Positions 1 to 29,455 of a stretch of DNA of 64,000 nucleotides are shown here, one piece after another (positions within the stretch are counted from its first letter, which is position 1; every line of letters starts with the position of its first letter). The position numbers and the translations under genes are program-made. The stretch lies in the sequence record ON529855.1, one strand, 5' to 3'. Below the pieces are notes generated by a model. The model ran no database searches, was not told the origin of the DNA, and saw nothing but the letters and a program-made list of their open reading frames with translations.

Positions 1-103
1 AGCGGACAAAAGTTAACAAGAGGTTAACGCCGTGGCGATTTTTCAGGCGCGCTCGCGGCGAACGGGCGTTAACCTTAACGGCCGTTTACAAAGCCAGGCC
101 CGC

Positions 104-433
104 CTAGTGCGCGTGGAAGTCCACGCGCCCGGCGGGCGAGACGTCGAAGTCCCAGACGTTGAAGCGGGCGGCCTCGGCGGCCTCGGCCTCTTCAGCCGCG
201 CGGGCGGCGGCATAGGCCTCGCCTTCGGCCTTGTGGGCCGCTTCGGCCTCGGCCAGTTCCGCGCACTCGCGGGCGTAGGCCTCGGGGCAGCCGTAGCCCG
301 TGGGGCGGTTGGGGCGCGCGTCGAGCCACGCCTGCGCGGCGGCGACCGTGACGCCCGCCATGACCGGGCGGACGCCGTAGTCGTTGCGGTGCAGGGCGTA
401 GTAGAGGTCGAGGGTTTCCTGATCGGCGGTCAT
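104..433 (-). CDS. hypothetical phage early protein (109 aa)
   Basis: ATG at 433 with GGAGAG RBS, downstream of CtrA box 487. Confidence 0.75.
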   Translation of the reverse strand: MTADQETLDLYYALHRNDYGVRPVMAGVTVAAAQAWLDARPNRPTGYGCPEAYARECAELAEAEAAHKAEGEAYAAARAAEEAEAAEAARFNVWDFDVSPAGRVDFHAH

Positions 434-510
434 CACGTCTCTCCGGCGGGCCAGTCCCGCCACGTCCTCACCCTAGCGGACAGGTGTTAACAAGAGGTTA
501 ACAGCCGCGA

Positions 511-605
511 GAAAATCGGGCAGGGTCCCCGGTCGAAAAATCAGGCAGGGTCCCCGGTCGAAAAATCAGGCAGGGTCCCCGGTCGAAAAATCAGGCAGGG
601 TCCCC
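511..605. repeat. 25-bp tandem repeat GAAAAATCAGGCAGGGTCCCCGGTC (about 4 copies)
   Basis: CAGGGTCCCC at 521, 546, 571, 596. Confidence 0.95.
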
Positions 606-633
606 ATTAACCTTAACGGGCGGGGCGCTCTCG

Positions 634-867
634 TCACTGGCGCGTGTGCCAGTGACGCGCCAGTCGGGAGGTTCGCGGGTTTGTCCCGTCACTATCCCAT
701 TGCCCCGCCGCGACCCAGCCGATGGCGTCGCGCGCGTTGCGGGGATTGTGCTCGGCACCAGAGTCCAAGTCTAGCAGAACCGCGCCATGTGCTCGAACGT
801 CGTCTGGATAACGGGCCTCTATGGCGTTGGCGAGGCGAACCGCTAAGACGTTGCTGCGTCGGATCAT
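634..867 (-). CDS. hypothetical protein (77 aa)
   Basis: Start follows the stop of the 869-982 ORF by 1 nt. Confidence 0.6.
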   Translation of the reverse strand: MIRRSNVLAVRLANAIEARYPDDVRAHGAVLLDLDSGAEHNPRNARDAIGWVAAGQWDSDGTNPRTSRLARHWHTRQ

Positions 868-868
868 G

Positions 869-982
869 TCAGCGCCCTTTCCGGGAGTAGGAGCCTTTGC
901 CCTTGCGGGCCTTGACCACGCGGACCCGGTAAGCGGGGGTGGCGAGGGCGGCGGCGGCGGGGTTGCGTTTCGGGGCGGCCAT
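869..982 (-). CDS. ArfA-like small basic protein (37 aa)
   Basis: Hand translation MAAPKRNPAAAALATPAYRVRVVKARKGKGSYSRKGR; GGAGA RBS; CtrA box 1025; KGKGSYxRK is the ArfA core motif. Confidence 0.65.
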   Translation of the reverse strand: MAAPKRNPAAAALATPAYRVRVVKARKGKGSYSRKGR

Positions 983-1035
983 GGGTGTCTCCGTGGTTGA
1001 TAGAGACACCCTAGCCGACAGAAGTTAACAAGAGG

Positions 1036-1482
1036 TTAAGCGTCTGGATATTGCGCCTGAAGCTTCGCCAGCGTGGCCCGGTCCTCGGCTTCGGCGGCGC
1101 GGCGGGCCTCGTCGCGGCGCTTTGCGGCGGCGGTGCGCTTGGCGTCGCGGGCGGCGGTTTCAGGGGCCAGCCACGCCGGGTCCGCGCCCTCGGCGACCGG
1201 GGCCAGGTAGGACAGGGGGAAGGACACCTCGGCCCAGTCCTGATAGCCGTAGCTTCCCGAAACGTAGAATTTGACGTCCACGGTTTCAGGCTTGTCGCCG
1301 CGCGCCTCGTCCAGTTCCCAGCTTTCGAGATAGCCATAGACGACAGTGTCCAGACGTTGGTCCTTGGGCTTCACAGGCTCATCCAGCCGGAAGATGTAAA
1401 GCGCGCGGGCCAAGTGCTCCAGCGCCTCGTTCAGGGCGTCGCGCTCGGTCACAAAAGCCTTGAGACGGTCAGGGGTCAGCAT
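1036..1482 (-). CDS. hypothetical protein (148 aa)
   Basis: GGAGA RBS; TAA stop lies inside CtrA box 1025. Confidence 0.75.
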   Translation of the reverse strand: MLTPDRLKAFVTERDALNEALEHLARALYIFRLDEPVKPKDQRLDTVVYGYLESWELDEARGDKPETVDVKFYVSGSYGYQDWAEVSFPLSYLAPVAEGADPAWLAPETAARDAKRTAAAKRRDEARRAAEAEDRATLAKLQAQYPDA

Positions 1483-1497
1483 GGGCGGTTCTCCGGT

Positions 1498-1971
1498 TCA
1501 GGTCGCGGCGGTTTCGGTCAGGGCGGCGCGCAGGGCTTGGGTGACGGGGCGGATCGTCAGGGGATAGGCTTTCGAGACGTCCCAGTGGCGTTGCATCAGG
1601 GCTTCGGCCTCGTCCAGAGTCTCGGCGGTCCCCTCCTTCAGCTTGACCCAGCCGGGGGCGATTGACGACACGTCCTCGATCACGACATAGGGCGCGGGCA
1701 GACGCACAACCTCAAACCGCAAGGCCGGGTTTTCCGCCACGCCGCACGACTTGACGACTTTGAAGTGCGACTCATCCACGACGCGCAAGGCAAAGCGCGC
1801 CTGATAGGTGTCGGCGTCTTTCTTTTCGACGAAAAGGCCCAGTCCGTTGTTGCGCTCCCACTCGGCCAGCTTCTTGGTGAAGCGGGCGGGCGGCTTCGGC
1901 GCGCCGTCCGTGAAACGGATCGTGGCGCCGTAGGGGGCCAGCGCGTGCAGTTCGGTGGCGGTCAGAAACAT
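1498..1971 (-). CDS. hypothetical protein, N-terminus resembles an alphaproteobacterial plasmid/ICE family (F-DG-P-PP-RF-KKL--W---N)
   Basis: First gene after CtrA box 2016; motif recalled, not searched. Confidence 0.75.
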   Translation of the reverse strand: MFLTATELHALAPYGATIRFTDGAPKPPARFTKKLAEWERNNGLGLFVEKKDADTYQARFALRVVDESHFKVVKSCGVAENPALRFEVVRLPAPYVVIEDVSSIAPGWVKLKEGTAETLDEAEALMQRHWDVSKAYPLTIRPVTQALRAALTETAAT

Positions 1972-2110
1972 GGGGGCTCTCCCGTAGATGATGCGTCGGT
2001 TCTAGCACCGATTCGTTAACAAGAGGTTAACGGGCCGGGCGGGACTGGCGGGCGTTAACCTTAACGGCGGGCAGGCAGGATCAGGCCCGCCGAGGAGGCG
2101 GGCCGTCGCC

Positions 2111-2623
2111 TTAAACCGTGATGGCGTCGCGGGCCTTGGTCAGTTCCTCGATCAGCACATCAAGGCGGCGCACCGCCTCTTCGCCGCTGTCACAGTCTTC
2201 CTTGGCGTCCAGTTCCACCATGACGGCGGTGAAGATGGTGTCGCCCCCGTCCGTCGCATCGGCCAGGGTTTCCATCCACGCGTAATCCGCCTCGCCGTAG
2301 GCGTTGGCGAACTCGCGTTGCCACGGCGACAGGGGCGTGTCGGGCAGGGTGACGCCCAGCGTATGCGGCATCAGGTTGGTGGCGACTTTCAGGATTTGGA
2401 ATGACCCCGCCATGCCGTCGTCATAGGCGCATTGCAGTTCCTTGGCGATCTGGCGGGCGAGGGCGTCGCCGGTCGCCGCGCCTTGATCGTCGCCCAGCAC
2501 GGCCTCGTCGTCGCCAAGGTCTCGGGTCAGCAGCACGATGGCCTGATATTGATGGTCATGGTGGGCGCGGCAGTGCTCCACCACGTCGGCGCGCGGCAGG
2601 ATGAAAGGGGTAAGGTCGGTCAT
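2111..2623 (-). CDS. hypothetical protein (170 aa)
   Basis: CtrA box 2666, GGGAGA RBS. Confidence 0.8.
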   Translation of the reverse strand: MTDLTPFILPRADVVEHCRAHHDHQYQAIVLLTRDLGDDEAVLGDDQGAATGDALARQIAKELQCAYDDGMAGSFQILKVATNLMPHTLGVTLPDTPLSPWQREFANAYGEADYAWMETLADATDGGDTIFTAVMVELDAKEDCDSGEEAVRRLDVLIEELTKARDAITV

Positions 2624-2735
2624 GGGCTCTCCCGTCGATGATGCGTCGGTTCTAGCACCGATTCGTTAACAAGAGGTTAACGCGCCGGGCGGGGCGGCGG
2701 GCGTTAACCTTAACGGAAGGTGAAGGGTCGGCGCG

Positions 2736-3065
2736 TCAGGGGAGGCGCGCCGGGTTCAGTGACAGACTGACGCGGCGGGCCTTGGACGGCTTGCCGGTCA
2801 GGATTCGCTTGTCGGTCTTGGCCCCGCAGCAGGTGCAGACGGCCCGACCGAGATCGAACCGGACCGAGGCCAGGGGGTCGGCGGTGCCGTTCACGGTCAG
2901 TTTGAGCGCCACGTCTGACAGCTTGGGGTGATGGCCCTGTCTGCCCCGGCGGCGCTCGACGTGGGCGCTCATGCCCGCCGCGTTGCGGTTGCCCCGGCGG
3001 ACCACAGTCCCGGCGACCTTGTAGAGGCCGCCGGAAAAGGTGTTGTCGATGGCGTAGCGCCGCAT
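2736..3065 (-). CDS. hypothetical protein with CxCC motif (109 aa)
   Basis: TGATG coupling to upstream ORF. Confidence 0.65.
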   Translation of the reverse strand: MRRYAIDNTFSGGLYKVAGTVVRRGNRNAAGMSAHVERRRGRQGHHPKLSDVALKLTVNGTADPLASVRFDLGRAVCTCCGAKTDKRILTGKPSKARRVSLSLNPARLP

Positions 3066-3238
3066 CAGGCGTTCACGTCAAAGCGGCCAACGCGGTTCCC
3101 ATTGACGTCGCGCACGGCGCCCATGTCGGCCCCGTTCTCGATCTTGTCGGCGAGGTCGCGCAGGATGCGGGCGAGTTCGCCGGGCTTGGCGTCGTCGTCA
3201 AAAGCGGCGTTGCCGGTGTCGATTTCCAGTTTGAACAT
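3065..3238 (-). CDS. conserved phage hypothetical protein (57 aa, MFKLEIDTGNAAF...DVNGNRVG)
   Basis: Hand-translated; GGAGA RBS; CtrA box 3281. Confidence 0.75.
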   Translation of the reverse strand: MFKLEIDTGNAAFDDDAKPGELARILRDLADKIENGADMGAVRDVNGNRVGRFDVNA

Positions 3239-3424
3239 GGTCTGTCTCCGTTTCGATCCTTAGACCATAGCCGACAAAAGTTAACAATAGGTTAAGGGCT
3301 TCGCGGCCTGTTGCGAGGGGTTGGCGTTAACCTTAACGGGGCGGGGCAAAAGAGGGACGGCGGCCATCCCGGCGCCGTCCAGTTTACCGCGATCAGCGTT
3401 CGCGGCGACGCGTTCGGTTGCCGC

Positions 3425-3724
3425 CTAGAGGGCCGTCAGGGCGTGCCACAGGGCGTTAGGGACCACGCCGCCCGCCGCGACCGGATCGAAGGCGGTTTCC
3501 CCGCCCTCGGGGCCGTAGTGGGGCATGACGCAGCCGGGCAGGGCGTCGATCATGCGGATGCGGTAGAGCGGAACGTCTGCGAAAGGGGGGTTCTCAACCC
3601 GGCCCAGGACCTCGGCGCGACCTTCGCCGCCATTGAGGTAGCCCGGCGCATAGGTCACGATCTGGCCCGGCGCAAAGGCGGTGTTTTCCGGGGTGCGGAT
3701 AGGGGCGACGGCGATGCGGGTCAT
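3425..3724 (-). CDS. hypothetical protein, possible SH3-like beta barrel (99 aa)
   Basis: Follows the 3726-3905 ORF; PGQIV...EVLG...LYRI pattern. Confidence 0.65.
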   Translation of the reverse strand: MTRIAVAPIRTPENTAFAPGQIVTYAPGYLNGGEGRAEVLGRVENPPFADVPLYRIRMIDALPGCVMPHYGPEGGETAFDPVAAGGVVPNALWHALTAL

Positions 3725-3725
3725 G

Positions 3726-3905
3726 TCAGGCTCCAGCGGACAGAAGGACGGCGGTCGAAAGGTGTTGCGTCGCCTGCTTGCGCAGGGCGGCGGTGAGGAG
3801 GCGGGCGGCTTCCTTGGCGTTCCCGGCCAGCGCCGCCGCTTCGGCGCGCTTGGCGAAAAAGGCCTTGGACTTGCGGGCGCGCCGGGCGCGTTGGTAGTCG
3901 GTCAT
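3726..3905 (-). CDS. small basic helical protein (59 aa)
   Basis: Hand-translated MTDYQRARRARKSKAFFAKR...; CtrA box 3950. Confidence 0.65.
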   Translation of the reverse strand: MTDYQRARRARKSKAFFAKRAEAAALAGNAKEAARLLTAALRKQATQHLSTAVLLSAGA

Positions 3906-4035
3906 CGGGCTTGCTCCCTTGTGATGCCTCTAGTCCTACAGGACAGAAGTTAACAAGAGGTTAACGCCACGAACTTTTCGGCCGCCGGGCGGCGCGGGCG
4001 GCGTTAACCTTAACGCCGGGCGGCGGCGGGGCGGC

Positions 4036-4251
4036 CTAGCGGCGGCCAGCCCCTTGGGTCTTTTGGGCCAGGCGCCGCTCGCGCCCGGCGGTCCAGCCCC
4101 GGCGGTAGGCGTCGCCGATCTGGCGACGGTCCACGCCCGCCGCCCACGACATCCGGTTGTCGCGGCGCCCGTATTCCAGCCCGGACTCGGCGTCGATGAC
4201 GCCGCCGTGATATTGCGCCATCAGGGCGCGTTCCGTGACCGGGAGCCCCAT
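4036..4251 (-). CDS. hypothetical protein with Rmf/CrpP-like YxxGxxD...AYxxGW motif (71 aa)
   Basis: Last gene of a translationally coupled 3-gene operon. Confidence 0.6.
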   Translation of the reverse strand: MGLPVTERALMAQYHGGVIDAESGLEYGRRDNRMSWAAGVDRRQIGDAYRRGWTAGRERRLAQKTQGAGRR

Positions 4252-4475
4252 CAGTGAACCCCGCCCAGCCGGGCGGCGCGCTGGTCGTCGTTTTCCATAT
4301 AGAAGTGACCGTCGATGCGGTAGATGCGTTTTCCGGCGTCATAGGGGCGCAGGCCCCCGAACGCGACTTGGAAGGTGGCGGGGGCGTCGCCCACGTAGAG
4401 GGTCGCGCCGTCCGGCTTGACGCAGACGGCGGCCCCCTCGCGGACCTGAACGGTTCCGATCAGGCGGCGGGCCAT
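4251..4475 (-). CDS. hypothetical protein (74 aa)
   Basis: TGATG coupling on both sides. Confidence 0.7.
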   Translation of the reverse strand: MARRLIGTVQVREGAAVCVKPDGATLYVGDAPATFQVAFGGLRPYDAGKRIYRIDGHFYMENDDQRAARLGGVH

Positions 4476-4774
4476 CAGGCGGCGGCCTTCTTGGCGGCGG
4501 GCTTATAGCCCTCGACGCGGCCTTCCAGCAGGGCGGACCCGTCCAGCGGACCCTCGAACGAGTCCACGTCGTCCATGGCCGCCATCGTCACGGCGCGGAA
4601 GGCCTTTTTGCGGACGACGGAATTCACCGCCCCGTCGTTGGCGCGGCTGACGGCGCGGTAGCAGGCTTCGGGGTGAGATTGAGCGCGGACGGTGCGCTTA
4701 TAGACGCCCATGTCGTCGCCCATCCAGAACATGACGACGAACTCTTGGCGTTCGGGGCGGATCGGGTGTTGCAT
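4475..4774 (-). CDS. hypothetical protein (99 aa)
   Basis: AAGGGA RBS before ATG 4774; CtrA box 4826. Confidence 0.7.
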   Translation of the reverse strand: MQHPIRPERQEFVVMFWMGDDMGVYKRTVRAQSHPEACYRAVSRANDGAVNSVVRKKAFRAVTMAAMDDVDSFEGPLDGSALLEGRVEGYKPAAKKAAA

Positions 4775-4925
4775 CGCGGGTGGTCCCTTGCGGTGGTTTG
4801 TTCCCTTATACATAGGGGACAGAAGTTAACAAGAGGTTAAGACGCGAAAGTTTTTTGGGCGGGGCAGGCGGGCGTTAACCTTAACGACGGGTTAATGGAT
4901 CAGCGGCCCCGAAGGGCCGCCCCTG

Positions 4926-5345
4926 TCAGGCCGCGACCGGCGCGCGCAACAGGGTCCACAGACGGTCCATCGCCTTGTTGACGACGTGGGGCGACCCGAC
5001 GCCGAACGGCGTGACGTTGACCACGTCGGCGGACTTCCAGACATAGGCCCGGATCGTCGCGACGCGGGGACCGTGCGGCGGCTGTTCGGTGGTGACGAAC
5101 AGGGTGACGCCCAAGGCGGGGACGTCGTAGAAGCCGCCGGGGAACTTCGTGCCGAAGCCCTTCATGGCGCCCTTGTCGAACCAATGCCCGCGACGACGGC
5201 GCGCGTAGTCGCGTTCGATATTGGCGAGGCAGTTGCTCGATCCCTCGAAGGCCGGGCCTTCGTGCGGCGCGGCGGCGGCGGCGGCGAGGAGGCCCGGCAG
5301 GGCGGCGGCGGCGGCTTGGGCGATGCGTTCGGCTTGGGTGGTCAT
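4926..5345 (-). CDS. hypothetical protein (139 aa)
   Basis: GGAGA RBS; CtrA box 5387. Confidence 0.8.
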   Translation of the reverse strand: MTTQAERIAQAAAAALPGLLAAAAAAPHEGPAFEGSSNCLANIERDYARRRRGHWFDKGAMKGFGTKFPGGFYDVPALGVTLFVTTEQPPHGPRVATIRAYVWKSADVVNVTPFGVGSPHVVNKAMDRLWTLLRAPVAA

Positions 5346-5492
5346 GGTCGTCTCCGGTTTGATAGGTCCAACCTACAGGGGAGAAGTTAACAAAACGTTA
5401 ACGGCCGTCAAGGTCTTTCGGGCCGCGCGTTAAGGTTAACGGCGGGCGGGCGGCAGGGATGCGCCCCGGCGCGAGGCCGGGGCGATCCTGGG

Positions 5493-5813
5493 TCAGCCGA
5501 TCAGGCGCGTCTTGAGCGTCGCCCGGCCTTCCGGCGTCAGCTTGGCGCGTTGGGCGCGGAGGAAGTCAAGCCCCTTTTGATAGGAGTCGATCCTGCCGCC
5601 GTATTGGCGCTCCAACCACTTCAACGGCTCCGGGTAATGCGAGGCGTAGAAGGCCACGCGACCCGGCCTGATGCGGGGGAACAGCTTGGCGCGGGCCTCT
5701 TTGATCGAGGTCGCGCCGGGGACGGGCAGTTCCGCGACCACGCGCCCCTTGCGGAGGATATGGGCCGTGTTCAGTTCCGGCGCGTAGGCGTGGCGTTCGA
5801 GGATCAGTTTCAT
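5493..5813 (-). CDS. hypothetical protein (106 aa)
   Basis: GGAGA RBS; CtrA box 5856. Confidence 0.8.
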   Translation of the reverse strand: MKLILERHAYAPELNTAHILRKGRVVAELPVPGATSIKEARAKLFPRIRPGRVAFYASHYPEPLKWLERQYGGRIDSYQKGLDFLRAQRAKLTPEGRATLKTRLIG

Positions 5814-5866
5814 CGGTCGTCTCCGTTTCGATCCTTAGACCATAGGCGACAGAAGTTAACAAGAGG

Positions 5867-6508
5867 TTAAGAGGTGAAGTTTTCCAGATAGCGGCGGCGC
5901 ATCCCCGCGACCGTCGTCGGCGTGACCCGGACAATGTCGGCGTTTTTGCGCATCATATCCGCCCGCATGAACGACGTCGTCGCCAATTGCAGGGTGTGGT
6001 TCACGCAGGAATGATAGCCGTCTTTCAGGCGCTCAATCGGCCACGTCGCCGGTTGCAGCTTGGCGCGTTCCAAGGTCTCCAGCGGGATCGGCACGGCGAG
6101 GTCGTCGCGGTGCTGATCGGACTCCGTCCGTTCATAGGTCGCGCCGCGCGGATAGACGCCCAAGATCAAATCCCCGTTGTTCAGCCGGAACCACGTCAGG
6201 CCGGAACGCCCGTCGTCGTCAACCGCTTGCGCCAGCACGTAGCGGGCCACGGCGGCGTCCGCCGGGACGGCCCACGCCACAACCGAATCGAGCATATTGC
6301 CGTCTTCGTCATGGGCGAAGATCGCGGACGGGGGGCCAGGTTCCTCCACGACGCCGGACGGGTCTAGGCCATAGCGCCCTTCGAGCCAGACGGCGCGGGC
6401 CATGGTCAGGCCGTCGCGATAGGCGTCGCGTTCGGCCTCCGTCTCAAAGGGGCCGTGCAGGACGTTCGCCGGGCAACGCATGTAAAAGCCAACCGCTGAA
6501 TCGGTCAT
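5867..6508 (-). CDS. hypothetical protein (213 aa)
   Basis: GGGAGA RBS; CtrA box 6551; stop inside box 5856. Confidence 0.8.
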   Translation of the reverse strand: MTDSAVGFYMRCPANVLHGPFETEAERDAYRDGLTMARAVWLEGRYGLDPSGVVEEPGPPSAIFAHDEDGNMLDSVVAWAVPADAAVARYVLAQAVDDDGRSGLTWFRLNNGDLILGVYPRGATYERTESDQHRDDLAVPIPLETLERAKLQPATWPIERLKDGYHSCVNHTLQLATTSFMRADMMRKNADIVRVTPTTVAGMRRRYLENFTS

Positions 6509-8016: not shown

Positions 8017-8070
8017 GAGGGGTCTCCGGTTGCGGGCCTGTTGAGAGACAGGCCCGGCGTGAATAGGGGC

Positions 8071-11897: not shown

Positions 11898-11927
11898 TTG
11901 ACGGTTTCTTAACGACTCGGCGCTAGG
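11898..11927 (+). promoter_or_regulatory. Plus-strand CtrA-type promoter (TTGA-N7-TTAAC-GACTC-GGC-GCTAGG)
   Basis: Same box-N8-GCTAG geometry as the cassette promoters; TTGACG -35; GANTC site; upstream TTAACCAT half-site at 11885; no convincing ORF downstream. Confidence 0.6.
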
Positions 11928-12104
11928 CTCAAGGGTTCCATAGCCACGCCTCGCGCCGGGTCCGATCCCCCGCGCGCGGTGTCACGCGCTCGCCTCGACC
12001 GGGGCGGGGCGCCCGGCCGCGCGCCCCGACATCAGGAGGCGCGAGCCCGCCCGGCTGGGCGGTCGATCGGTCATGCCGGCGACCGCCAGGGCGGGGGTGC
12101 GTCG

Positions 12105-12240
12105 AATCGAAACGGCGTCAGGTCAAGTCGGCGGACGTAGAATCGAAATGGCGTCAAGTCAAGTTCGCTCGCGTCAAATTTAAATGGCGTCAAGTCAAGT
12201 TCGCTCGCGTCAAATCGAAACGGCGTCAGGTCAAGTTCAT
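12105..12240. repeat. About 36-bp tandem repeat built from CGTCAAAT / GTCAAGTCAAG units (about 4 copies)
   Basis: GTCAAGTTCGCTCGCGTCAAAT(TT/CG)AAA(T/C)GGCGTCA(A/G) repeated. Confidence 0.9.
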
Positions 12241-12403
12241 CGCCAGGACCGGAGCGAAAACGACGCCGCCCGGCGCGCATGAAAGCGGCCGGGCGGCAGG
12301 ATTGATCGATTCAGAAACAGAGCCCTACAACCATGAGGGCGAAAACAATCTTGGACGCAGCACAGATTTTATCAAGCATATTCAGGGGGTTCCTTCTACT
12401 AAG

Positions 12404-12547
12404 GAGTCACGTCCGGTGGAAAACGTGACAGGTCGTCGGGACGCTACAGGTAGAAAACGCGCGAGTCATCGTCCGGGGCTAACGTGACTGAACTTTTTGT
12501 TAATCCCGGCAGGGAACTGGAGTCACGCCCGGTGGAAAACGTGACTC
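12404..12547. promoter_or_regulatory. Three spaced inverted repeats AGTCAY-N14-GTGAC
   Basis: GAGTCACgtccggtggaaaacGTGACA, GAGTCATcgtccggggctaacGTGACTG, GAGTCACgcccggtggaaaacGTGACTC; all with a 14-nt spacer. Confidence 0.8.
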
Positions 12548-12560
12548 CGGGGTTTTGGCG

Positions 12561-13544
12561 TCAGTCGGCGCTCTGGGCGATGACCGTGGCGGCGGTCGTG
12601 CGGCTGGCGAACTGCTCGCTCGCGATGTCCCCCTTCAGCCCCTCAAAGGCCATGATGCTCGCCCTCAGGTCCGGGGCGATGTAGTCGGTCCCCTCAGCGG
12701 TCGCGTCCGCCTGAAACAGGTCCAGCAGGCGCGACCGCACCCCGGCGGCGTCGTCCGCATAGAGGATCGGCGCCCCTTCCTGCTCGGGCTCGATCCGATA
12801 CGGGCGGGGCTCGCACTCGATCTCGAACGGCCCTTGCCAGTTGCGGACCTCGGCCGGCGCCAGGGCGGCGTCGGACAGTTCGTCATAGACGCCGTTCTCG
12901 CGGTCGCCGCATTCCTCGACCTCGGCCTGAGACACGAAGAACTCATGCCGGGCCTCATCCGCCGCGATGGCGTGGTCCATGATCCACGCCTGACCTTGGA
13001 AGGTCGCGCGATAGGGCAGGGTTTCGGGCGCCGGCAGGGCGGACGCCGGGGGGTCGCGGTCCATCCAGAAGCGATAGAGGGCCGCCCAGGCGCGCGCGCG
13101 CTGGCGGTCGCCGGTCGTGGGCAGATAGGCGTCGTGCAGGGCCTCGGCGGCGGCGGTGCGGTCCGGCGTGTCCGGATCGGCCTGATCCGCTTCAAAGGCG
13201 TCGAAGGTCAGCAGGACCGCCTGCGTGTGACGGGCGGTCCACTCACCGGCCGGACCCGCCGCCAGAACCTCGCGCACCTCGGGGAGGGTCAGGTGGGAAA
13301 ACTGGGCAGGGTCCCCGACGATAAATTCCGAAGGGTCCCCGGCCTTCGATTCGCGAGGGTCCCCGGCGAGGAATTGCGCAGGGTCCCCGGCGATGGATTC
13401 GGCAGGGTCCCCCCGCTCGATTCCGTCCGCGATGCCGTAGAGCCGGCCGATCAGGCCTTGGGCGGCTTCATGGGTGGGGTTGTGACGCATCGCCAGCACT
13501 TGGGCGGCGGCGGCGCGGATCAGGGCGGGATAGGTGATGCTCAT
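12561..13544 (-). CDS. mosaic hypothetical protein with five GDPxxxxx repeats (327 aa)
   Basis: AGAGGAG RBS; CtrA box 13598. Confidence 0.8.
   Translation of the reverse strand: MSITYPALIRAAAAQVLAMRHNPTHEAAQGLIGRLYGIADGIERGDPAESIAGDPAQFLAGDPRESKAGDPSEFIVGDPAQFSHLTLPEVREVLAAGPAGEWTARHTQAVLLTFDAFEADQADPDTPDRTAAAEALHDAYLPTTGDRQRARAWAALYRFWMDRDPPASALPAPETLPYRATFQGQAWIMDHAIAADEARHEFFVSQAEVEECGDRENGVYDELSDAALAPAEVRNWQGPFEIECEPRPYRIEPEQEGAPILYADDAAGVRSRLLDLFQADATAEGTDYIAPDLRASIMAFEGLKGDIASEQFASRTTAATVIAQSAD
13305..13415. repeat. 24-bp period AGGGTCCCC array inside CDS (5 copies)
   Basis: Same core as the arrays at 511-605 and 31350-31560; encodes GDPAESIA/GDPAQFLA/GDPRESKA/GDPSEFIV/GDPAQFSH. Confidence 0.9.
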
Positions 13545-23045: not shown

Positions 23046-23105
23046 GCGGGGTCTCCTTCCCGGTGGTCGATGGTCTGACCCTACAGGCCAGAGGTTAACA
23101 GGAGG

Positions 23106-23621
23106 TTAATCGGCGAAGATTTCCGACAGGGGAGGGATGATTTTGTAGGGGATCGCCTCGACGCTGGCCTTGTTGAAGGCGCCCAGATAGGTCTTGTAGT
23201 AGCGGGCGCGCTTGCCGTCCGTCATCAGCTTCCACTTGGTCGCGTGACCCGGAATCCACTGCTGATTGTCGGCGGCCTCCATGGCGGCGATGAACTGCGC
23301 CACGGTCGGGCCGTTCGCCTCGGCGTCGGTCGGCTCGATACGGGTCAGTTCGTGCCAGGGATGGTCGTCCTTGTAGTGACCGCCGGCGCCGTCCGACGAC
23401 CAGTCCGCCGCCTCCAGCCCGACCAAGCCCGGCAGGAAGTCCTCGCCGTCGCCGGTCAGCAGGGCGTCTATGGCGCACGCCTGTTCCAGCGACATCGCGC
23501 CGTCCAGCACGACCTCCAAGTGCTCTTTGTAGTTCGCGGCGTCGCGATACATATAGCTGACGCAGGTGTTGCGCTTGGGCTCGGCGAAGTCCGAGGCGAT
23601 GACGAAAGACGGCTCGATCAT
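23106..23621 (-). CDS. conserved phage hypothetical protein (Y-YRDA-NYK motif)
   Basis: GGAGGAGA RBS; CtrA box 23673; stop inside box 23095. Confidence 0.8.
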   Translation of the reverse strand: MIEPSFVIASDFAEPKRNTCVSYMYRDAANYKEHLEVVLDGAMSLEQACAIDALLTGDGEDFLPGLVGLEAADWSSDGAGGHYKDDHPWHELTRIEPTDAEANGPTVAQFIAAMEAADNQQWIPGHATKWKLMTDGKRARYYKTYLGAFNKASVEAIPYKIIPPLSEIFAD

Positions 23622-23683
23622 GGTGTCTCCTCCATGGGTGATCTCGATTGAGACCACCCTACAGGCAAGAAGTTAACAAGAGG

Positions 23684-24166
23684 TTAATCGGCGGCGGGAA
23701 CTTTGAGGTCCACGCCGAAGACGTGAACCAGTTCGCCGCTCGGCTTGCGCACGATCACGCCCAGCCACTTCTCCTCGACAAAATAGCCCGTCACCTCGGC
23801 GTCGCCGATTCGGTTGACGGCGACGCGCACGGTCGCGCCGACCTGGGGCGGTGAATCCTCGCCGGACCACAGGACAGCGCCTTCGATGCCCGGCGGAAGC
23901 AGGCGGCCGTCTTCCCAGCGCGCCAGTTCATAGGCGGGCAAGTGCGGACGCCACAGGGGCGCATAGACATCCATCAGCCACGACGGGCCGTAGGTGTTGC
24001 GGATCGCGCGCAGGAGATTGCCCGCGTCCTCCTGCGTGTCGCCGCCGGTCGCCCACAGAATGGTCAGATGCTCTTTCCAACCGCCTTCGACCTTGGCGTA
24101 TTTGTCGGCGAAGTTCAGCAGGGCGGCGGACGCCTCGGGCGTCAGGGCGGGGTAGGTGTCAGGCAT
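23684..24166 (-). CDS. hypothetical protein (WK--L---W--G...LR-IRN-YGP-WL motif)
   Basis: GGGAGA RBS; CtrA box 24210; stop inside box 23673. Confidence 0.8.
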   Translation of the reverse strand: MPDTYPALTPEASAALLNFADKYAKVEGGWKEHLTILWATGGDTQEDAGNLLRAIRNTYGPSWLMDVYAPLWRPHLPAYELARWEDGRLLPPGIEGAVLWSGEDSPPQVGATVRVAVNRIGDAEVTGYFVEEKWLGVIVRKPSGELVHVFGVDLKVPAAD

Positions 24167-24340
24167 GGGGCGTCTCCCTTGTTCGATGATTCCTTGTAGC
24201 GGCGATCTCTTAACAAGAGGTTAACGCCGTGACAAGAGCGCGCGGGCGTTAACCTTAACGCGACGTTAAGGTTAACGCCCGGCTAAAGGGAAAGACGCGC
24301 CGCCGGGGGAGACAACCCGGCGGCGCGGCAGGCGGCGGCC

Positions 24341-24901
24341 TCAGACGTCGAGGTCGCCGTATTGCGTCCCGCACTGGACGATTTCGCCGGTGGCGTCATC
24401 CCAGTGGATGCGGTTCAGGCGCAGCTTGTTGCCGGTGCGGGCGTGGGTCCATTCCACCTGACAGGTAATCATGTCGTCGAAGACCGCCGAGGGCGCGCCG
24501 TATTGCGTCCAGTCCACGCCGCCCCGGTCGTCAACCTGCTGCTTGGCGTCGGACAGGATGCGGGCCAGAACCTCGGGCATCAGGCGGCCGGGCGCCTTCT
24601 TGAGGCCGTAGGCCCCGCGTCCGTTGTTCGCCATATTGCTGAAGTTCGTGAAGTCCTGCGTGTAGTTCTCGACCTCGATCGACCCCGGCTGGGGCAGGTC
24701 AAACATCAGGTCCGACAGCATGTCGCCAACCGTATAGGTCTCGGTGGCGGCGTCCAGCTTGTCGGCCAGTTCGGCGCCCTCGTCGCCCGGCTGGACGTAG
24801 AGTTCGGCGCCGTCAGCGCGGCGCGCCAGGACGCCGCCCATCGAATCACGCCACGCCTTGAACGCGCCGTCGTCGCTCTCCCAGGTCGGAGCCTTGCTCA
24901 T
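24341..24901 (-). CDS. hypothetical protein (186 aa)
   Basis: ATGA overlap with upstream gene. Confidence 0.75.
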   Translation of the reverse strand: MSKAPTWESDDGAFKAWRDSMGGVLARRADGAELYVQPGDEGAELADKLDAATETYTVGDMLSDLMFDLPQPGSIEVENYTQDFTNFSNMANNGRGAYGLKKAPGRLMPEVLARILSDAKQQVDDRGGVDWTQYGAPSAVFDDMITCQVEWTHARTGNKLRLNRIHWDDATGEIVQCGTQYGDLDV

Positions 24902-25311
24902 GCCTCGGCCTCCTCTTCGACTTCGGCGTAGGCGCTGGGGATGCGCTGGCCGGTGTGGTCGCAGAACAGGTCCGCGTTCTCATAGTTGATTTGGGCGCCG
25001 TCGATCCGCCAGCCGGTCGAACAATCGTTCAGGTGGTCATAGCAGACCTGGGCGAATTGTTGCTGCACCGCGTCGAACGACAGGGCGGCGCCGTCGCGGG
25101 TGACGAAGTAGAGCGGATAGCCGCCGAGGTCCGTGAAAGGTCCGGCGCGCAGCGCGGCCTTGACCTGCTGAAGGGCCTTGATCGGGCGGGTGTCCGAGAC
25201 GAGCAGCGGTTGGCGATAGCCGCAGCGCAGGGGCGGGCGCTTCGACCAGTCAGGGTCGCGCGTGTCGAAGAGGTCGCCGTGGCTGACGAAAAGGTGGGCG
25301 GGCAATGTCAT
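24898..25311 (-). CDS. conserved phage hypothetical protein (GGYPLYF-T-DG motif)
   Basis: GGAGGAGA RBS; CtrA box 25357. Confidence 0.8.
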   Translation of the reverse strand: MTLPAHLFVSHGDLFDTRDPDWSKRPPLRCGYRQPLLVSDTRPIKALQQVKAALRAGPFTDLGGYPLYFVTRDGAALSFDAVQQQFAQVCYDHLNDCSTGWRIDGAQINYENADLFCDHTGQRIPSAYAEVEEEAEA

Positions 25312-25478
25312 GGGGTCTCCTCCCGTTGCTGACCCTCCCTGTATCGCACGAAGTTCTTAACAACAAGTTAACGCCGCGATTTATTTTCAGCGGGGGAGGC
25401 GGCGGCGTTAACCTTAACGCGCCGTTAAGGTTAACGCGAGCGGGTCGCAGGAAGAGAGAGGGCCGTAGCCCTCTCCCC

Positions 25479-25988
25479 TTATTGCTGCTCGACATGAGCG
25501 CGGTAATAGGCGACGCCTTCGGCCTCAGGCATCAGGTTCAGGATCACCGCCTGAGGCTGCTTCTCATGGATGACCTTGACGTGGGCGGCGAGCGGGTGCG
25601 GCGCCGTCAAGTCCATCTGGAAGATGCCGGGCGAGCCCGGTTTGGTGAAGAGGACTTTTTTCTTGATGGTGCGGCGATAGGCCTTGAGCCATTCGTGGGC
25701 GGTAATCTCCTCGCCGATGAGCAAAGACAGGTCCATGTCGATCAGGCCCAGCCCTTCGGACAGGTCGAACTGGGGATAGGTCGCCTTGATGCGCGCCTCC
25801 AAGGCGGCGAGGTCGTCATAGGTGAATCGGCCGACCGGGTGGATGCGGTCTTCGCCGCCCTGGCCGGTGTTGGAGGCCTCGGCGAACTTCTCGCCATCGA
25901 CATAGACGGTGGCGGTGTAGGCGGTCGTCTCCTCCGACAGGGACGGCATGGTCTTGAGGTTCTTGAGGGTGATGACGGGTTTCTGCAT
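25479..25988 (-). CDS. conserved phage hypothetical protein (SEET-A--A-VY-DG...N-G-GG motif)
   Basis: AGGAGA RBS; CtrA box 26033. Confidence 0.8.
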   Translation of the reverse strand: MQKPVITLKNLKTMPSLSEETTAYTATVYVDGEKFAEASNTGQGGEDRIHPVGRFTYDDLAALEARIKATYPQFDLSEGLGLIDMDLSLLIGEEITAHEWLKAYRRTIKKKVLFTKPGSPGIFQMDLTAPHPLAAHVKVIHEKQPQAVILNLMPEAEGVAYYRAHVEQQ

Positions 25989-26126
25989 GGCGGTCTCCTG
26001 ATCCGGTGATGTCTCACCCTAGCCGCAAGGTCTTAACAAATCGTTAACGCCGGTCAGCCTCGGCGCTGCGTTAAGGTTAACGCGGTCGGGTCGCAAAAAG
26101 GCGCCCGGTCGAAGCCGGGCGCTGGT

Positions 26127-26267
26127 TCAGGCGGCGGTGCGGTAGCGGGTGTGGCCCCGGTCCCAGGCGTAGGCCTCGACCGATCCGCTCGGGTGGGGGT
26201 TGTTCCACCACTTGACGCCCCGGTGCGCGGCGGCGTAGCCCGCGCCTTCGATCTGGGCGGCGTCCAT
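26127..26267 (-). CDS. small Rmf/CrpP-like motif protein (46 aa)
   Basis: MDAAQIEGAGYAAAHRGVKWWNNPHPSGSVEAYAWDRGHTRYRTAA; TGATG coupling; followed by a terminator. Confidence 0.6.
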   Translation of the reverse strand: MDAAQIEGAGYAAAHRGVKWWNNPHPSGSVEAYAWDRGHTRYRTAA

Positions 26268-26512
26268 CAGGCGCCGATCCGGTGGGCCGGGCAGAAGCCC
26301 GACACGACCTTGACGCGACCGCGCTTGAAGCCGGGGCGCAGGGCGCGCGCCGAGCGTTCGGCGTCGGCGGTCTTCATGTGGCCGCAGGCGCAGGATGCGC
26401 CGGGGTCGCGGGCCTGGGCCTCGCGCACCTTGTCGGCGCCGGCCTGGGTGCCGAGCCAGCCGCAAAAGGGCTCGCCGCCGACCGTGATGTGTGCGGGTTG
26501 AGTGTTCGTCAT
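26267..26512 (-). CDS. small Cys-containing protein (81 aa)
   Basis: AGGAGG RBS. Confidence 0.65.
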   Translation of the reverse strand: MTNTQPAHITVGGEPFCGWLGTQAGADKVREAQARDPGASCACGHMKTADAERSARALRPGFKRGRVKVVSGFCPAHRIGA

Positions 26513-26521
26513 CGGGGCCTC

Positions 26522-26719
26522 CTATAGGTTCAGGGCGGCGTCGAACGCCTGGGATTGCAGTTTCTTGGCGGCTTCGGCCTCGGCGGGGTAGAGCCGGGCC
26601 AGACCGTCGAAGCGCTCTTTCTGATGCGAGCGCTCGCCCTCGGCGGCGGTCATGTGCATGACCTCGCTCCACAGGTGGGCCATTTCGAGGATCAGGACGG
26701 AGCGGAGGGAAGCGTTCAT
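26522..26719 (-). CDS. hypothetical protein (65 aa)
   Basis: AAGGAGA RBS; CtrA box 26761. Confidence 0.7.
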   Translation of the reverse strand: MNASLRSVLILEMAHLWSEVMHMTAAEGERSHQKERFDGLARLYPAEAEAAKKLQSQAFDAALNL

Positions 26720-26771
26720 GACGGTCTCCTTGTTGACCTCGCCACCCTAGCAGCGAGGTCTTAACAAGAGG

Positions 26772-27269
26772 TTAACAGCGGCGAAGCATTTCGCGCATCA
26801 GGGCTTCCTCGTTGCGGGCGATGTCCAGCGCGGCGCGGTCGTGGCCTTGCTCATGCGCCTGCTTGGCCTGCTGTCGGCAGATGTCCTGGCGCTTGCGGAT
26901 GTCGGCCTCCGACAGGGTGCGGAACAGGGCGTCGGCCTCCTGATCGACCTTGACGGTCCAGTGCTGCTGCGATTCGTCGTCGGCGCGCAGGTGGGCGGGG
27001 AAGTAGGCCTGGGGCGCCGGGTCAGCCGGGACGGCGGCCGGGGTGTAGAGCCCCAGCACGACCGCCAGCGCGTCGCGGTGAAACTGCGAACCGTCCATCG
27101 CCGAGTTCAGCACGAAGGCGCGCGCCTCCAAATCATCGCCGAACGTCGGCGATTCGTCCTCGCGATGGATTTCATAGCGCGGGGCGTCGTAGCCGTCCGT
27201 GGTGTCGAACAGGCCCCAGCCCTCGGCGCAGGCGCGGTCTTCATCAAAAGGAATGGGCGTGGTTTTCAT
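26772..27269 (-). CDS. hypothetical protein (EGW-LFD...EI-R-DE motif)
   Basis: AGGAGA RBS; CtrA box 27314; stop inside box 26761. Confidence 0.8.
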   Translation of the reverse strand: MKTTPIPFDEDRACAEGWGLFDTTDGYDAPRYEIHREDESPTFGDDLEARAFVLNSAMDGSQFHRDALAVVLGLYTPAAVPADPAPQAYFPAHLRADDESQQHWTVKVDQEADALFRTLSEADIRKRQDICRQQAKQAHEQGHDRAALDIARNEEALMREMLRRC

Positions 27270-27427
27270 CGGGGTCTCCTGTCGTGGTCGGCGTCTGTTC
27301 TAGCACCGATTTGTTAACAAGAGGTTAACAAAGTTCGCGGCGGCGCCGGGCGTTAACCTTAATGCGCTGTTAAGGTTAACGGCGGGCGGGCGAAAGGGAC
27401 GCCCCGGCGCGAGGCCGGGGCGCGGGG

Positions 27428-27640
27428 TCAGTAGGGCCGGTCGAGGATGCGCCAGCCGGGCTTGTCGTCGGGGCCGGTCTCCGGCTCGACCTGATAGACG
27501 GTCCAGCGCTGGCCCATCGGCGATTGCAGGGCGGCGGTGGTGTCCGGGTAGGTCTTTTCGGTCACGTCGCGGTCGTCCTTGGCGAGCCAGTCGCCGACCC
27601 ACGGTTCGCCGGTGCGGTGCAGCAGGTAAACGGCCCCCAT
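27428..27640 (-). CDS. hypothetical protein (70 aa)
   Basis: TGATG coupling. Confidence 0.65.
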   Translation of the reverse strand: MGAVYLLHRTGEPWVGDWLAKDDRDVTEKTYPDTTAALQSPMGQRWTVYQVEPETGPDDKPGWRILDRPY

Positions 27641-27852
27641 CAGACGACCGCCAGCAGGCGCGCGTGCGAGGTCTCGACCGAATAGGCCTCGATCTGGAGC
27701 CCCGGCAGGGCGGCGCGCAGTTCGTCGCGCACAGCGAGGGCTTCGGCGGGGTCTTCGGTGGTCAGGCGCAGTTCGCCGATCCGGCGGGCTGGGGCGCCCT
27801 CGGCGGCGCGGCGCGACAGTTCCAGCCGCAGGTCGTAGGGGGTGTCGGTCAT
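27640..27852 (-). CDS. hypothetical protein (70 aa)
   Basis: GGGAGA RBS; CtrA box 27895. Confidence 0.7.
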   Translation of the reverse strand: MTDTPYDLRLELSRRAAEGAPARRIGELRLTTEDPAEALAVRDELRAALPGLQIEAYSVETSHARLLAVV

Positions 27853-27905
27853 CGGTGTCTCCCGTGATTGAGCGTCCGGTATAGCCGGAAGGTCTTAACA
27901 AATCG

Positions 27906-28271
27906 TTAACGGCTGGGTGCGCTTAGGCGGGCGATGATTTCGTCGTTCGTCATCGTGTCCATCAGGTCTTGCACCTGCCGGGCCTTGTCATCCTCGACCG
28001 CCTGGGCCGCCGCCTGGGCGCGGCGATGCTCGGCCAGCGCCGCCTTGCCGGCCTCGGTGGTCTCCGGGTCGATGGTCATGTAAAGGCTGACCTCGCGGCC
28101 CTGCCGATCCACGAAGGTCAGGCTTCCAGACGGCCGCACCTTGACGGTGAACTGCGCCTTGACCAGCCGCTCGGCGGTCTCCTGACCGAAGTCCCCGCCG
28201 AAGCTGCCGCCCGCCGCCTTGACGGTGTTGTCGCTCTTGAGCCGGGTGTGATAGCCGATGTTCTTGAACAT
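27906..28271 (-). CDS. hypothetical protein (121 aa)
   Basis: AAGGAG RBS before ATG 28271; stop inside box 27895. Confidence 0.75.
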   Translation of the reverse strand: MFKNIGYHTRLKSDNTVKAAGGSFGGDFGQETAERLVKAQFTVKVRPSGSLTFVDRQGREVSLYMTIDPETTEAGKAALAEHRRAQAAAQAVEDDKARQVQDLMDTMTNDEIIARLSAPSR

Positions 28272-28282
28272 GGGGTCGCTCC

Positions 28283-28621
28283 TTAGAAGGGAATGTCGTC
28301 GTCGAACGACGGGGGCGGGGCGTAGGTCTGGGCGGCGCGCGCGCGGCGGGCGGCGTCCATCTCGGCGCGCTCCTCGTCCGTCGCACCCCAATACTCGTCG
28401 TCTTCCGGGTGCGCGCCGGGCTCGCCGCGATAGTGCGGGTTCTTCACCCAAGCGTCGAACGGGTGCAGCAGCCACTCCACGTCAGGCGCCTCGAAGCCTT
28501 CCGACTGAGCGAACCCCGACAGGGCCAGGCTCATGTATTCGCCCTGGCTCAGCGACTCCATCGCCAGAGCGTCTTCCTTTTCGCGGCGGGCCTCTTCGGC
28601 CATTTCGATCACATCGCGCAT
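28283..28621 (-). CDS. small acidic protein ending in an SSB-type tail FDDDIPF (112 aa)
   Basis: AAGGAGAGA RBS; CtrA box 28663; no recognisable OB fold. Confidence 0.75.
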   Translation of the reverse strand: MRDVIEMAEEARREKEDALAMESLSQGEYMSLALSGFAQSEGFEAPDVEWLLHPFDAWVKNPHYRGEPGAHPEDDEYWGATDEERAEMDAARRARAAQTYAPPPSFDDDIPF

Positions 28622-28864
28622 CGGCGTCTCTCCTTGTGAGCCCCCTTTATGACAGCCAGAAGTTAACAACAAGTTAACGGCGGCGCTTTTCTGCATTTTT
28701 CTTCGGGGGGGCGGCGGCGGGCGTTAACCTTAATAGCCTGTTAAGGTTAACGGGCGGCTTCCAGCCTGGGAAACGGCGTCCCGGAACGGGACGCCTCTCC
28801 TAGAAGGTGAGCAGGATGACCAGCAGGGCCAGAAAGAGGCGGGAGGCGCCGGCCAGCTTGTCGA

Positions 28865-29335
28865 TCAAGACGCGTTGTCCGCCTTCATCGCCGCGCACAG
28901 GGTCTCGACCAGCCGCTTGTGGCGCGCCAGAGCGGCGGGGTCCGTGCGGTCGCCTTGGAAGGGGACCAGCACCAGAGGCGTGGCCGAGGGGTCCAGCGCC
29001 CAGAAGATTTCGGTCTCGCCGTCCGTCATCTGGAAGCTATAGACGTTCAGGTCGGCTGGGGCGTGGTCGAGGAAATAGACGCGGCCGTTGAACCGGGCGT
29101 TGAAGGGCTGTTCCGGCGTCGCCAAGTCGATCTCGGCCAGCACGGCGTCGCGCACGGCGTCAATCGGGTGGACGCCGTCTTCACCGGTTTCGTCAGGACG
29201 GGATTCGGCCTCGGCCTCCGCGTCGCGCTTGATGTCCTCGACCACGGCGGCGCGCGCCTCCTCCCAAGTCGCGCTGGCGCTAGGCTCCTCGTCGGGCATG
29301 AAGCCCGAGACGTTCGATCCGGTCACATAAGGCAT
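28865..29335 (-). CDS. hypothetical protein (G-MPD motif, 156 aa)
   Basis: GGGAGA RBS; CtrA box 29383. Confidence 0.75.
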   Translation of the reverse strand: MPYVTGSNVSGFMPDEEPSASATWEEARAAVVEDIKRDAEAEAESRPDETGEDGVHPIDAVRDAVLAEIDLATPEQPFNARFNGRVYFLDHAPADLNVYSFQMTDGETEIFWALDPSATPLVLVPFQGDRTDPAALARHKRLVETLCAAMKADNAS

Positions 29336-29426
29336 CGGGGTCTCCCTTGTTGATGCGAGGCTGCAATCTACGCGACAAGGTCTTAACAAAAAGTTAACAG
29401 CAGCGCAATCGCTTTTCTTCGCGATG

Positions 29427-29455
29427 TTAACCTCTTGTTAACTTCTTCGTGGGAT
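29427..29455 (+). promoter_or_regulatory. Plus-strand CtrA-box promoter TTAACCTCTTGTTAAC
   Basis: Exact reverse complement of the cassette box, divergent from box 29383, drives the 29489 gene. Confidence 0.85.

Follow-up and report, generated by a model that had tools for sequence, protein, structure and literature searches.

In Caulobacter, 52 promoters with the full motif of the cell-cycle regulator CtrA have been mapped, the first motif base lying near -35; at the CtrA-activated ctrA P2 promoter the motif starts at -39, and a box at -14 represses (Zhou 2015, PMC4287350). Phages of the phiCbK type contain large terminal repeats in which genes of unknown function are preceded by closely packed predicted CtrA sites, CtrA shifts these phage sites in gel assays, and the phiCbK gp005 and gp018 promoters lose activity ~29-fold and ~5-fold, respectively, in uninfected cells of a temperature-sensitive ctrA(ts) host (Mascolo 2022, PMC9437464). 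Here we describe an array of small genes, many of them preceded by a TTAA-N7-TTAA box (the CtrA box), in a 64,000-nucleotide stretch of DNA (the window). The window corresponds to bases 1-64000 of record ON529855.1, the 352,705-bp genome of Brevundimonas phage vB_BpoS-Domovoi, and its first 12 kb are 100% identical to that record from record position 1. Domovoi, isolated on B. pondensis, is a giant siphovirus with a prolate head and belongs to the subfamily Dolichocephalovirinae (the phiCbK group); its morphology is phiCbK-like, and its host genus belongs to the Caulobacterales. Neither the paper describing Domovoi nor a 2025 paper on the subfamily mentions CtrA, promoters or repeats. We consider it likely that the array carries ~50 near-identical CtrA-dependent core promoters and constitutes the probable terminal repeat of Domovoi.

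Distribution and anatomy of the CtrA boxes

The window contains 59 exact TTAA-N7-TTAA boxes, against 0.05 expected from shuffled sequence. Fifty-three lie at 13-29441, five at 29796-30111 and one at 31609, and none was found from there to the window end at 64,000. Genome-wide, 71 of 72 boxes fall inside a single contiguous segment of 37.4 kb (10.6% of the genome), which runs from record position 346,917 across the record origin to window position 31,623 and is bounded at one end by the serine protease and portal genes and at the other by the large terminase (TerL) gene. A left edge at position 13, as proposed in the first-pass annotation, is an artefact, because the record is circular with an arbitrary origin there; 12 further boxes lie to the left (record 346,917-351,806), and since the box at 13-27 drives DOMOVOI_05840, the array crosses the record origin. 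By these counts the perfect CtrA-type sites show the strong positional skew that belongs to the signature of Mascolo 2022, and the promoter boxes are intergenic, 0 of 50 lying wholly within a coding sequence (CDS). The same annotation had counted 43 boxes in 29.4 kb. This number equals the promoter-type boxes, made up of 41 minus-strand boxes, a single plus-strand box and one promoter-like core without a -10 (11031), whereas the full-box count in 13-29441 is 53; the remaining ~10 full boxes are built from a separate GTTAAGGTTAAC element (the upstream, or U, element).

Promoter-type boxes number 50 on the minus strand (41 in the window, 9 left of the origin) plus one on the plus strand, with the consensus TTAAC[C/T]T[C/G/T]TTGTTAA in gene direction (TTAAC-N4-TTGTTAA); individual boxes read TTAACCTC, TTAACTTG and the like. 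TA follows exactly 11 nt past the box in 37 promoters, while the others have it at 12-13 nt, or have GATACA at 11. The predicted -10 elements are variants of gcTAGAAC, gcTAGGGT and cTATGGT (GCTAGAAC, TAGGGT or TATGGT types); the housekeeping-sigma -10 consensus at CtrA-activated promoters is of the GCTANAWC kind. The ATG comes 41-53 nt past the box with GGAG(A) ahead of it, and an A/T-rich patch is present at about -54 to -47 in each core promoter. Downstream of every one of the 50 minus-strand boxes, an annotated start codon lies within 20-80 nt, as expected from the earlier description of boxes just upstream of small open reading frames (ORFs). Fifty of the 71 array genes have their own box, and each promoter serves one gene or an operon of 2-3 genes. 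Box orientation agreed with gene direction without exception, which bears out the proposal that the spacer asymmetry follows gene direction: the only plus-strand gene (29489) has a reversed box at 29427-29441, then 11 nt, GATAAG, and an ATG 47 nt past the box. A 34-nt position weight matrix (PWM) gave 43 matches in the window, all in the array, with 0 in the non-coding region between array and TerL (the hub) and 0 at 32-64 kb. The PWM scan and the count of exact boxes against shuffles thus gave the outcome anticipated at first pass, including the absence of promoter-type boxes right of 31.7 kb.

If the TAnnnT hexamer represents -12 to -7, the box, which starts 26 nt upstream of the hexamer, occupies -38 to -24. 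The design would therefore match the activated class of CtrA promoters, the predicted start at -38 being near the -39 of ctrA P2. The position of a -35 hexamer, 17 nt upstream of the -10, reads ACCTCT, and the TTGTTA within the box is not usable as a -35 because it lies only 12 nt from the -10. The promoters thus combine a housekeeping-type -10 with no functional -35 hexamer, and a generic sigma-70 promoter scan showed no enrichment. In the absence of such a hexamer, the host polymerase carrying its housekeeping sigma factor would need phosphorylated CtrA (CtrA~P) over the -35 region, an arrangement like that of ctrA P2 and other host full-motif promoters and of the phiCbK gp005 and gp018 promoters. 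Array transcription would then rise and fall with the activity of CtrA in the host. The cassettes are much more alike than binding of CtrA demands and were probably spread and homogenised by recombination.

This reading is anchored in phiCbK, whose three perfect boxes precede gp323, gp336 and gp338. Judging from the gene order, the first two of these genes are the copies of gp005 and gp018 at the right end. The perfect-box promoters read TTAACGGTTTGTTAA, then 11-12 nt, then (C/T)AGGGT, and the Domovoi PWM detected four further phiCbK sites near-identical to the Domovoi consensus, e.g. gGTAACCTTTTGTTAACTTCTGGCCTCTAGGGTg. The first-pass description of the boxes as CtrA-activated promoters is well founded as regards layout, the predicted -38 position and homology to the tested phiCbK promoters, but it went beyond the evidence in treating the genes as an early host-takeover set and in confining expression to swarmer and predivisional cells. 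For Domovoi itself we infer CtrA binding, the start sites, early timing and a cell-cycle gating effect.

Promoters with CtrA boxes are also abundant in other relatives: ~18 in 14 kb of CcrColossus, ~20 of a degenerate gTAAC-N6-GTTAA form in 16 kb of Bajun (B. goettingensis), and 32-36 in 29 kb of Bambus. The phiCbK region has three perfect boxes and at least seven promoters in 10.3 kb, compared to 71 boxes and ~50 promoters in 37 kb of Domovoi. Promoter density in Domovoi is ~2x that of phiCbK, and the promoter number is about that of the full-motif promoters (52) of the entire Caulobacter chromosome. PhiCbK, CcrSC, Colossus, Bajun and Gurke all show the gene order TerL - hub - array - peptidase - portal. 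This interval is annotated in phiCbK and CcrSC as the terminal repeat, which begins within the 3' end of TerL and, in phiCbK, contains small same-strand genes. Colossus has no repeat annotation; there, a drop in coverage marks the end of redundancy ~2 kb before the peptidase. This synteny indicates that the array is very probably the direct terminal repeat of Domovoi. A circular Domovoi record is as expected in that case, because a terminal repeat would collapse in assembly.

Exchange of the core promoter between Domovoi and Gurke

Phage Gurke (ON529850.1) infects the same host species, has a TerL 72% identical to that of Domovoi and carries a homologous 36-kb array. Its array promoter consists of ttttctgaaaaagagg TTGACAc, 17 nt, TAGAAG and then caacaacGGAGAcaccccATG, in ~47 copies, with a spacer of 17 nt in 46 of 50 matches. 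The A/T patch begins at the same coordinate in both phages, and TTGACA stands at -35 in Gurke where Domovoi has the box. Between the two arrays we identified 35 reciprocal-best orthologues; for 26 of these, a CtrA box in Domovoi is matched by TTGACA in Gurke, and not one of the 35 pairs shares the promoter type. When the upstream regions of orthologues were aligned, the terminator, linker, U element and 5' untranslated region (5'UTR) were kept, and the difference was limited to about -55 to -7. Within this interval the proximal GTTAAC of Domovoi aligns with GTTGAC of Gurke, with ~8 nt fewer before the -10. Each array contains traces of the other design: TTGAC occurs just upstream of the Domovoi boxes at 5387 and 15106, and Gurke has one CtrA-type promoter by PWM. 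The exchange of the module in concert over the whole set points to recombination among cassettes. We see the swap as a new and directly testable angle, and replacement of a module over dozens of cassettes makes a clear example of concerted evolution of viral regulatory DNA.

Gurke also has 14 full TTAA boxes, which are palindromes after terminators, and CcrSC is built likewise. In the regions scanned (CcrSC 290000-317489, Gurke 271511-321510) each full box sits in the middle of a palindrome with four half-sites, TTAACCTTAAC-N5-(G/A)TTAAGGTTAA, which follows a terminator and precedes a TTGACA promoter. Since its boxes are palindrome centres, CcrSC owes its published CtrA-site signature to a different element than phiCbK does.

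These comparisons bring up the possibility that the cassettes are mobile regulatory units resembling the PeSLs of T4-type phages, which are a documented precedent (PMC2839356, PMC4122927); near-identity would then result from recombination or gene conversion, and the -35 module would be secondary and interchangeable. The units are near-identical within a genome while the module differs between genomes (26 of 35 pairs differ, none alike), only the core promoter is replaced within otherwise alignable upstream regions, most array genes are ORFans, and close relatives with TerL 97-100% identical have only 42-73% of the first 12 kb in common. Breakpoints between Domovoi and Bambus, however, fell inside cassette intervals in 8 of 22 cases against 21% expected (p = 0.07, a trend only). 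Mobility explains the spread but not the retention of the CtrA box over four lineages and two host genera. We hold it only tentatively as an account in its own right; it is compatible with CtrA-dependent promoters and does not replace them.

Several observations weigh against the CtrA-dependent reading or limit its reach. The -10 assignment, and hence the -38 position, is a prediction from sequence. The spacer CCTCTTG and its flanks are conserved beyond the needs of CtrA, common descent or a second factor could account for much of the cassette similarity, and the 50 sites cannot be counted as independent of one another. CtrA control is optional on this host, because the Gurke orthologues use constitutive-looking promoters. 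One promoter per gene is likewise a property of the array rather than of CtrA, given that Gurke has ~47 ordinary promoters arranged in this way; the initial claim that density and one-promoter-per-gene layout exceed known sites is therefore weakened, the signature being published and the layout being shared by Gurke without CtrA. Lastly, host-genus genomes were uninformative: B. albigilva and a Brevundimonas metagenome-assembled genome each contain a single exact copy of the 16-mer GTTAACCTCTTGTTAA, both at the same orthologous intergenic position, where no -10 follows at 11 nt and no downstream gene could be recognised.

A GANTC lies ~35 nt downstream of this Brevundimonas GTTAACCTCTTGTTAA site. 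In all, GTTAACCTCTTGTTAA gave at least 120 single-copy matches, many of them in Alphaproteobacteria, including a Hyphomonas match that is uninformative on promoter geometry. A scan of IMG/VR with GTTAACCTCTTGTTAA yielded single-copy matches only, besides the known relatives (CcrPW twice, Colossus once), and no further large arrays.

Upstream elements, hub and genes of the segment

The second class of box, GTTAAGGTTAAC(GCC), occurs in either orientation, at times as a palindromic pair, and follows the upstream gene or terminator. TTAAGGTTAA is present in 48 copies in the window against 0.01 expected, and 53 of 55 copies genome-wide fall in array plus hub. A lone GTTAAGGTTAAC element outside the array, at 37885-37894, lies directly past a stop codon. 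The distance from U element to promoter box varies from 29 to 124 nt, and this spread rules out a fixed helical phasing of the two. An upstream element was found within 160 nt of 33 of 50 promoters, and a hairpin with T-tail accompanied it in ~21 of 50 (by a looser scan, in which some are doubtful); ~10 promoters directly adjoin the 3' end of the upstream ORF with neither U element nor terminator. A generic terminator scan showed no enrichment (13 found, 18 expected), and an Rfam search of 1-34000 gave no match. Of the fixed terminator - GTTAAGGTTAAC - box design put forward at first pass, the core geometry is indeed tight, but the full cassette is present in fewer than half of the promoters. 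The coordinates of one complete cassette, together with those of the other features, are collected in Table 1.

Table 1. Coordinates of features in and around the box-rich segment; positions refer to the window unless marked as record positions.
Feature	Position	Strand	Remarks
ArdC-type anti-restriction gene DOMOVOI_05790	record 349,334-350,245		left of window start; ArdcN 3.5e-36, MPTase-PolyVal 2.2e-42
Array continuation left of position 1	record 346,917-352,705	-	9 further promoters, 14 further CDS
Array share in window	1..29441	-	57 annotated small CDS, 41 CtrA-box promoters
First promoter box in window	13..27	-	drives the record's last gene, left of window start
25-bp unit GGGGACCCTGCCTGATTTTTCGACC, 3.8 copies	512..605		between a U element and its promoter box
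ArfA-like protein (alternative ribosome-rescue factor A), 37 aa	869..982	-	PF03889, 1e-9
Example of a full cassette	2624..2713	-	read on minus strand
Example cassette: U element	2713-2704	-	TTAAGGTTAA
Example cassette: CtrA box	2680-2666	-	TTAACCTCTTGTTAA
Example cassette: GANTC	2664-2660	-	GAATC
Example cassette: -10	2654-2649	-	TAGAAC, then GGGAGA, ATG 2623
Non-coding 'mini-hub' in array, 0.65 kb	11900..12560		GACTTGACGCC/GATTTGACGC repeats (12099-12238), hub-like CGTGACTC/GTCACGTT motifs
Winged-helix protein in array	27906-28271		no Pfam match
Divergent promoter pair	29383..29441	both	box 29383-29397 for minus gene 28865-29335; box 29427-29441 for plus gene 29489-29734
Hub, non-coding, between array and TerL	29735..31918		at least five repeat families
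Hub: GGTCATACC x3.4	29835-29868
Hub: 32-bp periodic TTAAGGTTAAC-N5-GTTAACCAt array	29989-30135		four full boxes
Hub: ~16 copies of 16-bp GATTTGACGC unit	30155-30430
Hub: dispersed CGTGACTC	about 30600-31040
Hub: small ORF	31139-31321
Hub: ~9 copies of 25-bp GGGGACCC..GAATTTTTCG unit	31340-31570
Hub: U-element cluster	31603-31684
Large terminase (TerL), 907 aa	31919..34642	-	right boundary of segment

The 25-bp unit GGGGACCCTGCCTGATTTTTCGACC recurs at 13306-13412 and ~9 times in the hub. A gap comparable to the hub follows TerL in phiCbK, CcrSC, Bajun and Gurke, and candidate functions of the hub are those of an origin, of a packaging site and of an injection-stop region.

When the 73 array proteins were searched against PHROG, 58 had no match; two of the 73 had a domain of unknown function (DUF) assignment, and none matched the PADLOC defence models. 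DOMOVOI_05790, which has its own CtrA-box promoter, matched the PHROG 'anti-restriction protein' at 6.6e-84, although it is annotated 'putative DNA primase' and its Gurke orthologue is likewise annotated as a primase. One array protein gave a weak RMF-like match (4e-5); its gene was not located among 10 small ORFs tested. Together with the ArfA-like protein, this suggests that the array includes factors acting on host ribosomes. An early role, accessory or in counter-defence, would suit the ArdC, ArfA-like and RMF-like genes, the timing here being a prediction. TerL aligns end to end with the intein-containing TerL of phiCbK and matches Intein_splicing over residues 169-470 (8e-8, just under the Pfam cut-off), so it likely contains an intein, not annotated in the record. 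Candidates for a phage CtrA-like protein (three winged-helix proteins, the 'middle transcription regulator' and others) were rejected, having no match to an OmpR-family DNA-binding domain.

Of the 50 promoters, 11 (1.3 expected) have a CcrM methylation site, GANTC (cGAATCg), always at the same position immediately past the box, about -22 to -18. Ten of these are in the window (e.g. 2664-2660, 2014-2010, 6549-6545, 15997-15993, 16935-16931) and one is left of it. All belong to one promoter subfamily (..cGAATCggtGCTAGAAC), and the count is not independent evidence because the 11 sites have a common origin. Caulobacter promoters with GANTC between -35 and -10 have a distinct activation time (Zhou 2015, PMC4287350). 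The phage encodes a GcrA homologue by domain search. A phage CcrM was considered and rejected: the methylases are of C5-cytosine and MT-A70 type, and neither fits the Pfam family of CcrM. The sole full CtrA box outside the array, at record about 187,028-187,070, lies upstream of DOMOVOI_03570 'flotillin'. It reads GTTAACCATATTTGTTAAC, including the CCAT extension associated with SciP, and is followed by GGTTAACCTTAAT, ~30 nt before the ATG.

Timing, possible other roles of the boxes and comparison with known systems

The purpose of CtrA-timed phage genes is unsettled between immediate expression in the only infectable cell type and deferred lysis. Expression in swarmer and predivisional cells and lytic deferment invoke the same mechanism with opposite predicted outcomes. 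In deferment, as proposed for phiCbK (Mascolo 2022, PMC9437464), the CtrA promoters would be silent in the infected swarmer, for example via SciP, and fire at the predivisional stage, delaying the programme. Caulobacter full-motif CtrA promoters do peak in predivisional cells, with SciP repressing late-S CtrA promoters in swarmers (Zhou 2015, PMC4287350), and Dolichocephalovirinae phages persist as episomal pseudolysogens. On the other hand, phiCbK mRNA makes up 14% of transcripts at 15 min, by which time 41% of phage genes have peaked, and an ArdC-type anti-restriction gene is most sensible if expressed at once. The motif (G/A)TTAACCAT(A/G), which marks late-S promoters turned off in G1, was found in 0 of 50 promoter boxes, with 13 occurrences nearby outside promoter boxes. 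Its absence would weakly favour on-in-swarmer timing, though the clue is weak either way because two published SciP motifs disagree. We regard deferment as possible but doubtful.

The boxes outside promoters may have a further use. Gurke and CcrSC retain palindromic full boxes despite their TTGACA-type promoters, and this persistence of non-promoter boxes leaves room, speculatively, for a second role of CtrA binding. It seems unlikely, though not negligibly so, that concerted evolution swept one or the other of two interchangeable -35 modules through ~50 cassettes (CtrA-dependent in the Domovoi group, constitutive in the Gurke group), that the non-promoter TTAA elements and the hub array, retained in both groups, form a CtrA sink or another CtrA-bound structure, and that the giant (>300 kb) phages compared here within the subfamily conserve CtrA binding, of which activation is one use. 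The sink on its own, in which the segment draws CtrA~P from the host origin and regulon and pushes the infected swarmer toward a replication-permissive state, we judge slightly less likely still. About 20 full boxes, including the four of the 32-bp periodic hub array, and most TTAAGGTTAA elements are not promoters, the phage has a GcrA homologue, and no more than 52 full-motif promoters have been mapped on the entire chromosome of Caulobacter (PMC4287350). The dose of such a sink would be 71 full boxes and ~55 TTAAGGTTAA per copy, doubled if terminally redundant and multiplied by replication. The proposal is, however, speculative throughout, with CtrA binding to TTAAGGTTAA, whose half-sites stand 6 bp apart, being putative, and Colossus is without any such elements.

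A reader of the box other than CtrA (a phage or virion protein, or another host regulator), with the resemblance to the CtrA site being coincidence or mimicry, is very improbable even though spacer and flanks are conserved beyond CtrA's known needs and the array encodes a winged-helix protein (27906-28271) without Pfam match: phiCbK promoters of the same layout are active in uninfected Caulobacter, which argues against a phage-encoded reader, lose activity in ctrA(ts) and are shifted by CtrA, the phage helix-turn-helix proteins tested have no match to a CtrA-type (OmpR-family, Trans_reg_C) DNA-binding domain, and no response regulator is annotated among 561 CDS.

Compared to the host promoters of Caulobacter, the CtrA-dependent promoters proposed for Domovoi share TTAA-N7-TTAA, which in Domovoi is predicted to overlap the -35 region and to start at about -38, next to the -39 of ctrA P2 (Zhou 2015, PMC4287350). 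The host promoters usually have one imperfect box (fliQ CTAA.., fliL AAAA..) and diverse flanks, whereas Domovoi has dozens of perfect, near-identical boxes, never with the SciP-associated CCAT extension. The T4-type PeSLs are alike in that units of terminator and early promoter stand beside small non-essential ORFans in rapidly changing regions, one per gene (Arbiol 2010, PMC2839356; Comeau 2014, PMC4122927), and unlike in that they are strong sigma-70 promoters, while the Domovoi -35 module is an activator site (that of Gurke is sigma-70-like). The defining arrangement of PeSLs, a repeated promoter with a terminator stem-loop between accessory genes, is found in the Domovoi array. Two looser, functional analogies with no sequence relationship are the pre-early genes of phage T5, where small host-takeover genes lie in a long terminal repeat with a repeat-rich non-coding neighbour, and the pho-box promoters. 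In the latter, tandem 11-bp sites for PhoB, an activator of the OmpR family, stand in for the -35 element at a distance of ~10 bp from the -10, on its upstream side.

The closest systems are those of the subfamily itself. The CtrA promoters of phiCbK-like phages and of Domovoi belong to Dolichocephalovirinae, lie downstream of TerL and have the same order of box, 11-nt gap and TAGGGT-type -10; in both, the genes are small, of unknown function and on one strand, and the sites are intergenic and confined to one region, an end region in phiCbK and probably so in Domovoi. Domovoi differs in its host genus and in the added, interspersed GTTAAGGTTAAC element, and it lies outside the analysis of Mascolo 2022. 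It is thus the largest member so far of a known kind, whose wiring was already published for the subfamily, and it presents the largest and cleanest promoter set of this kind. Gurke shares with Domovoi the host species, the synteny, the 35 orthologues and the terminator, U element and 5'UTR, and differs in the core promoter; the pair is therefore a natural control for the purpose of the CtrA wiring.

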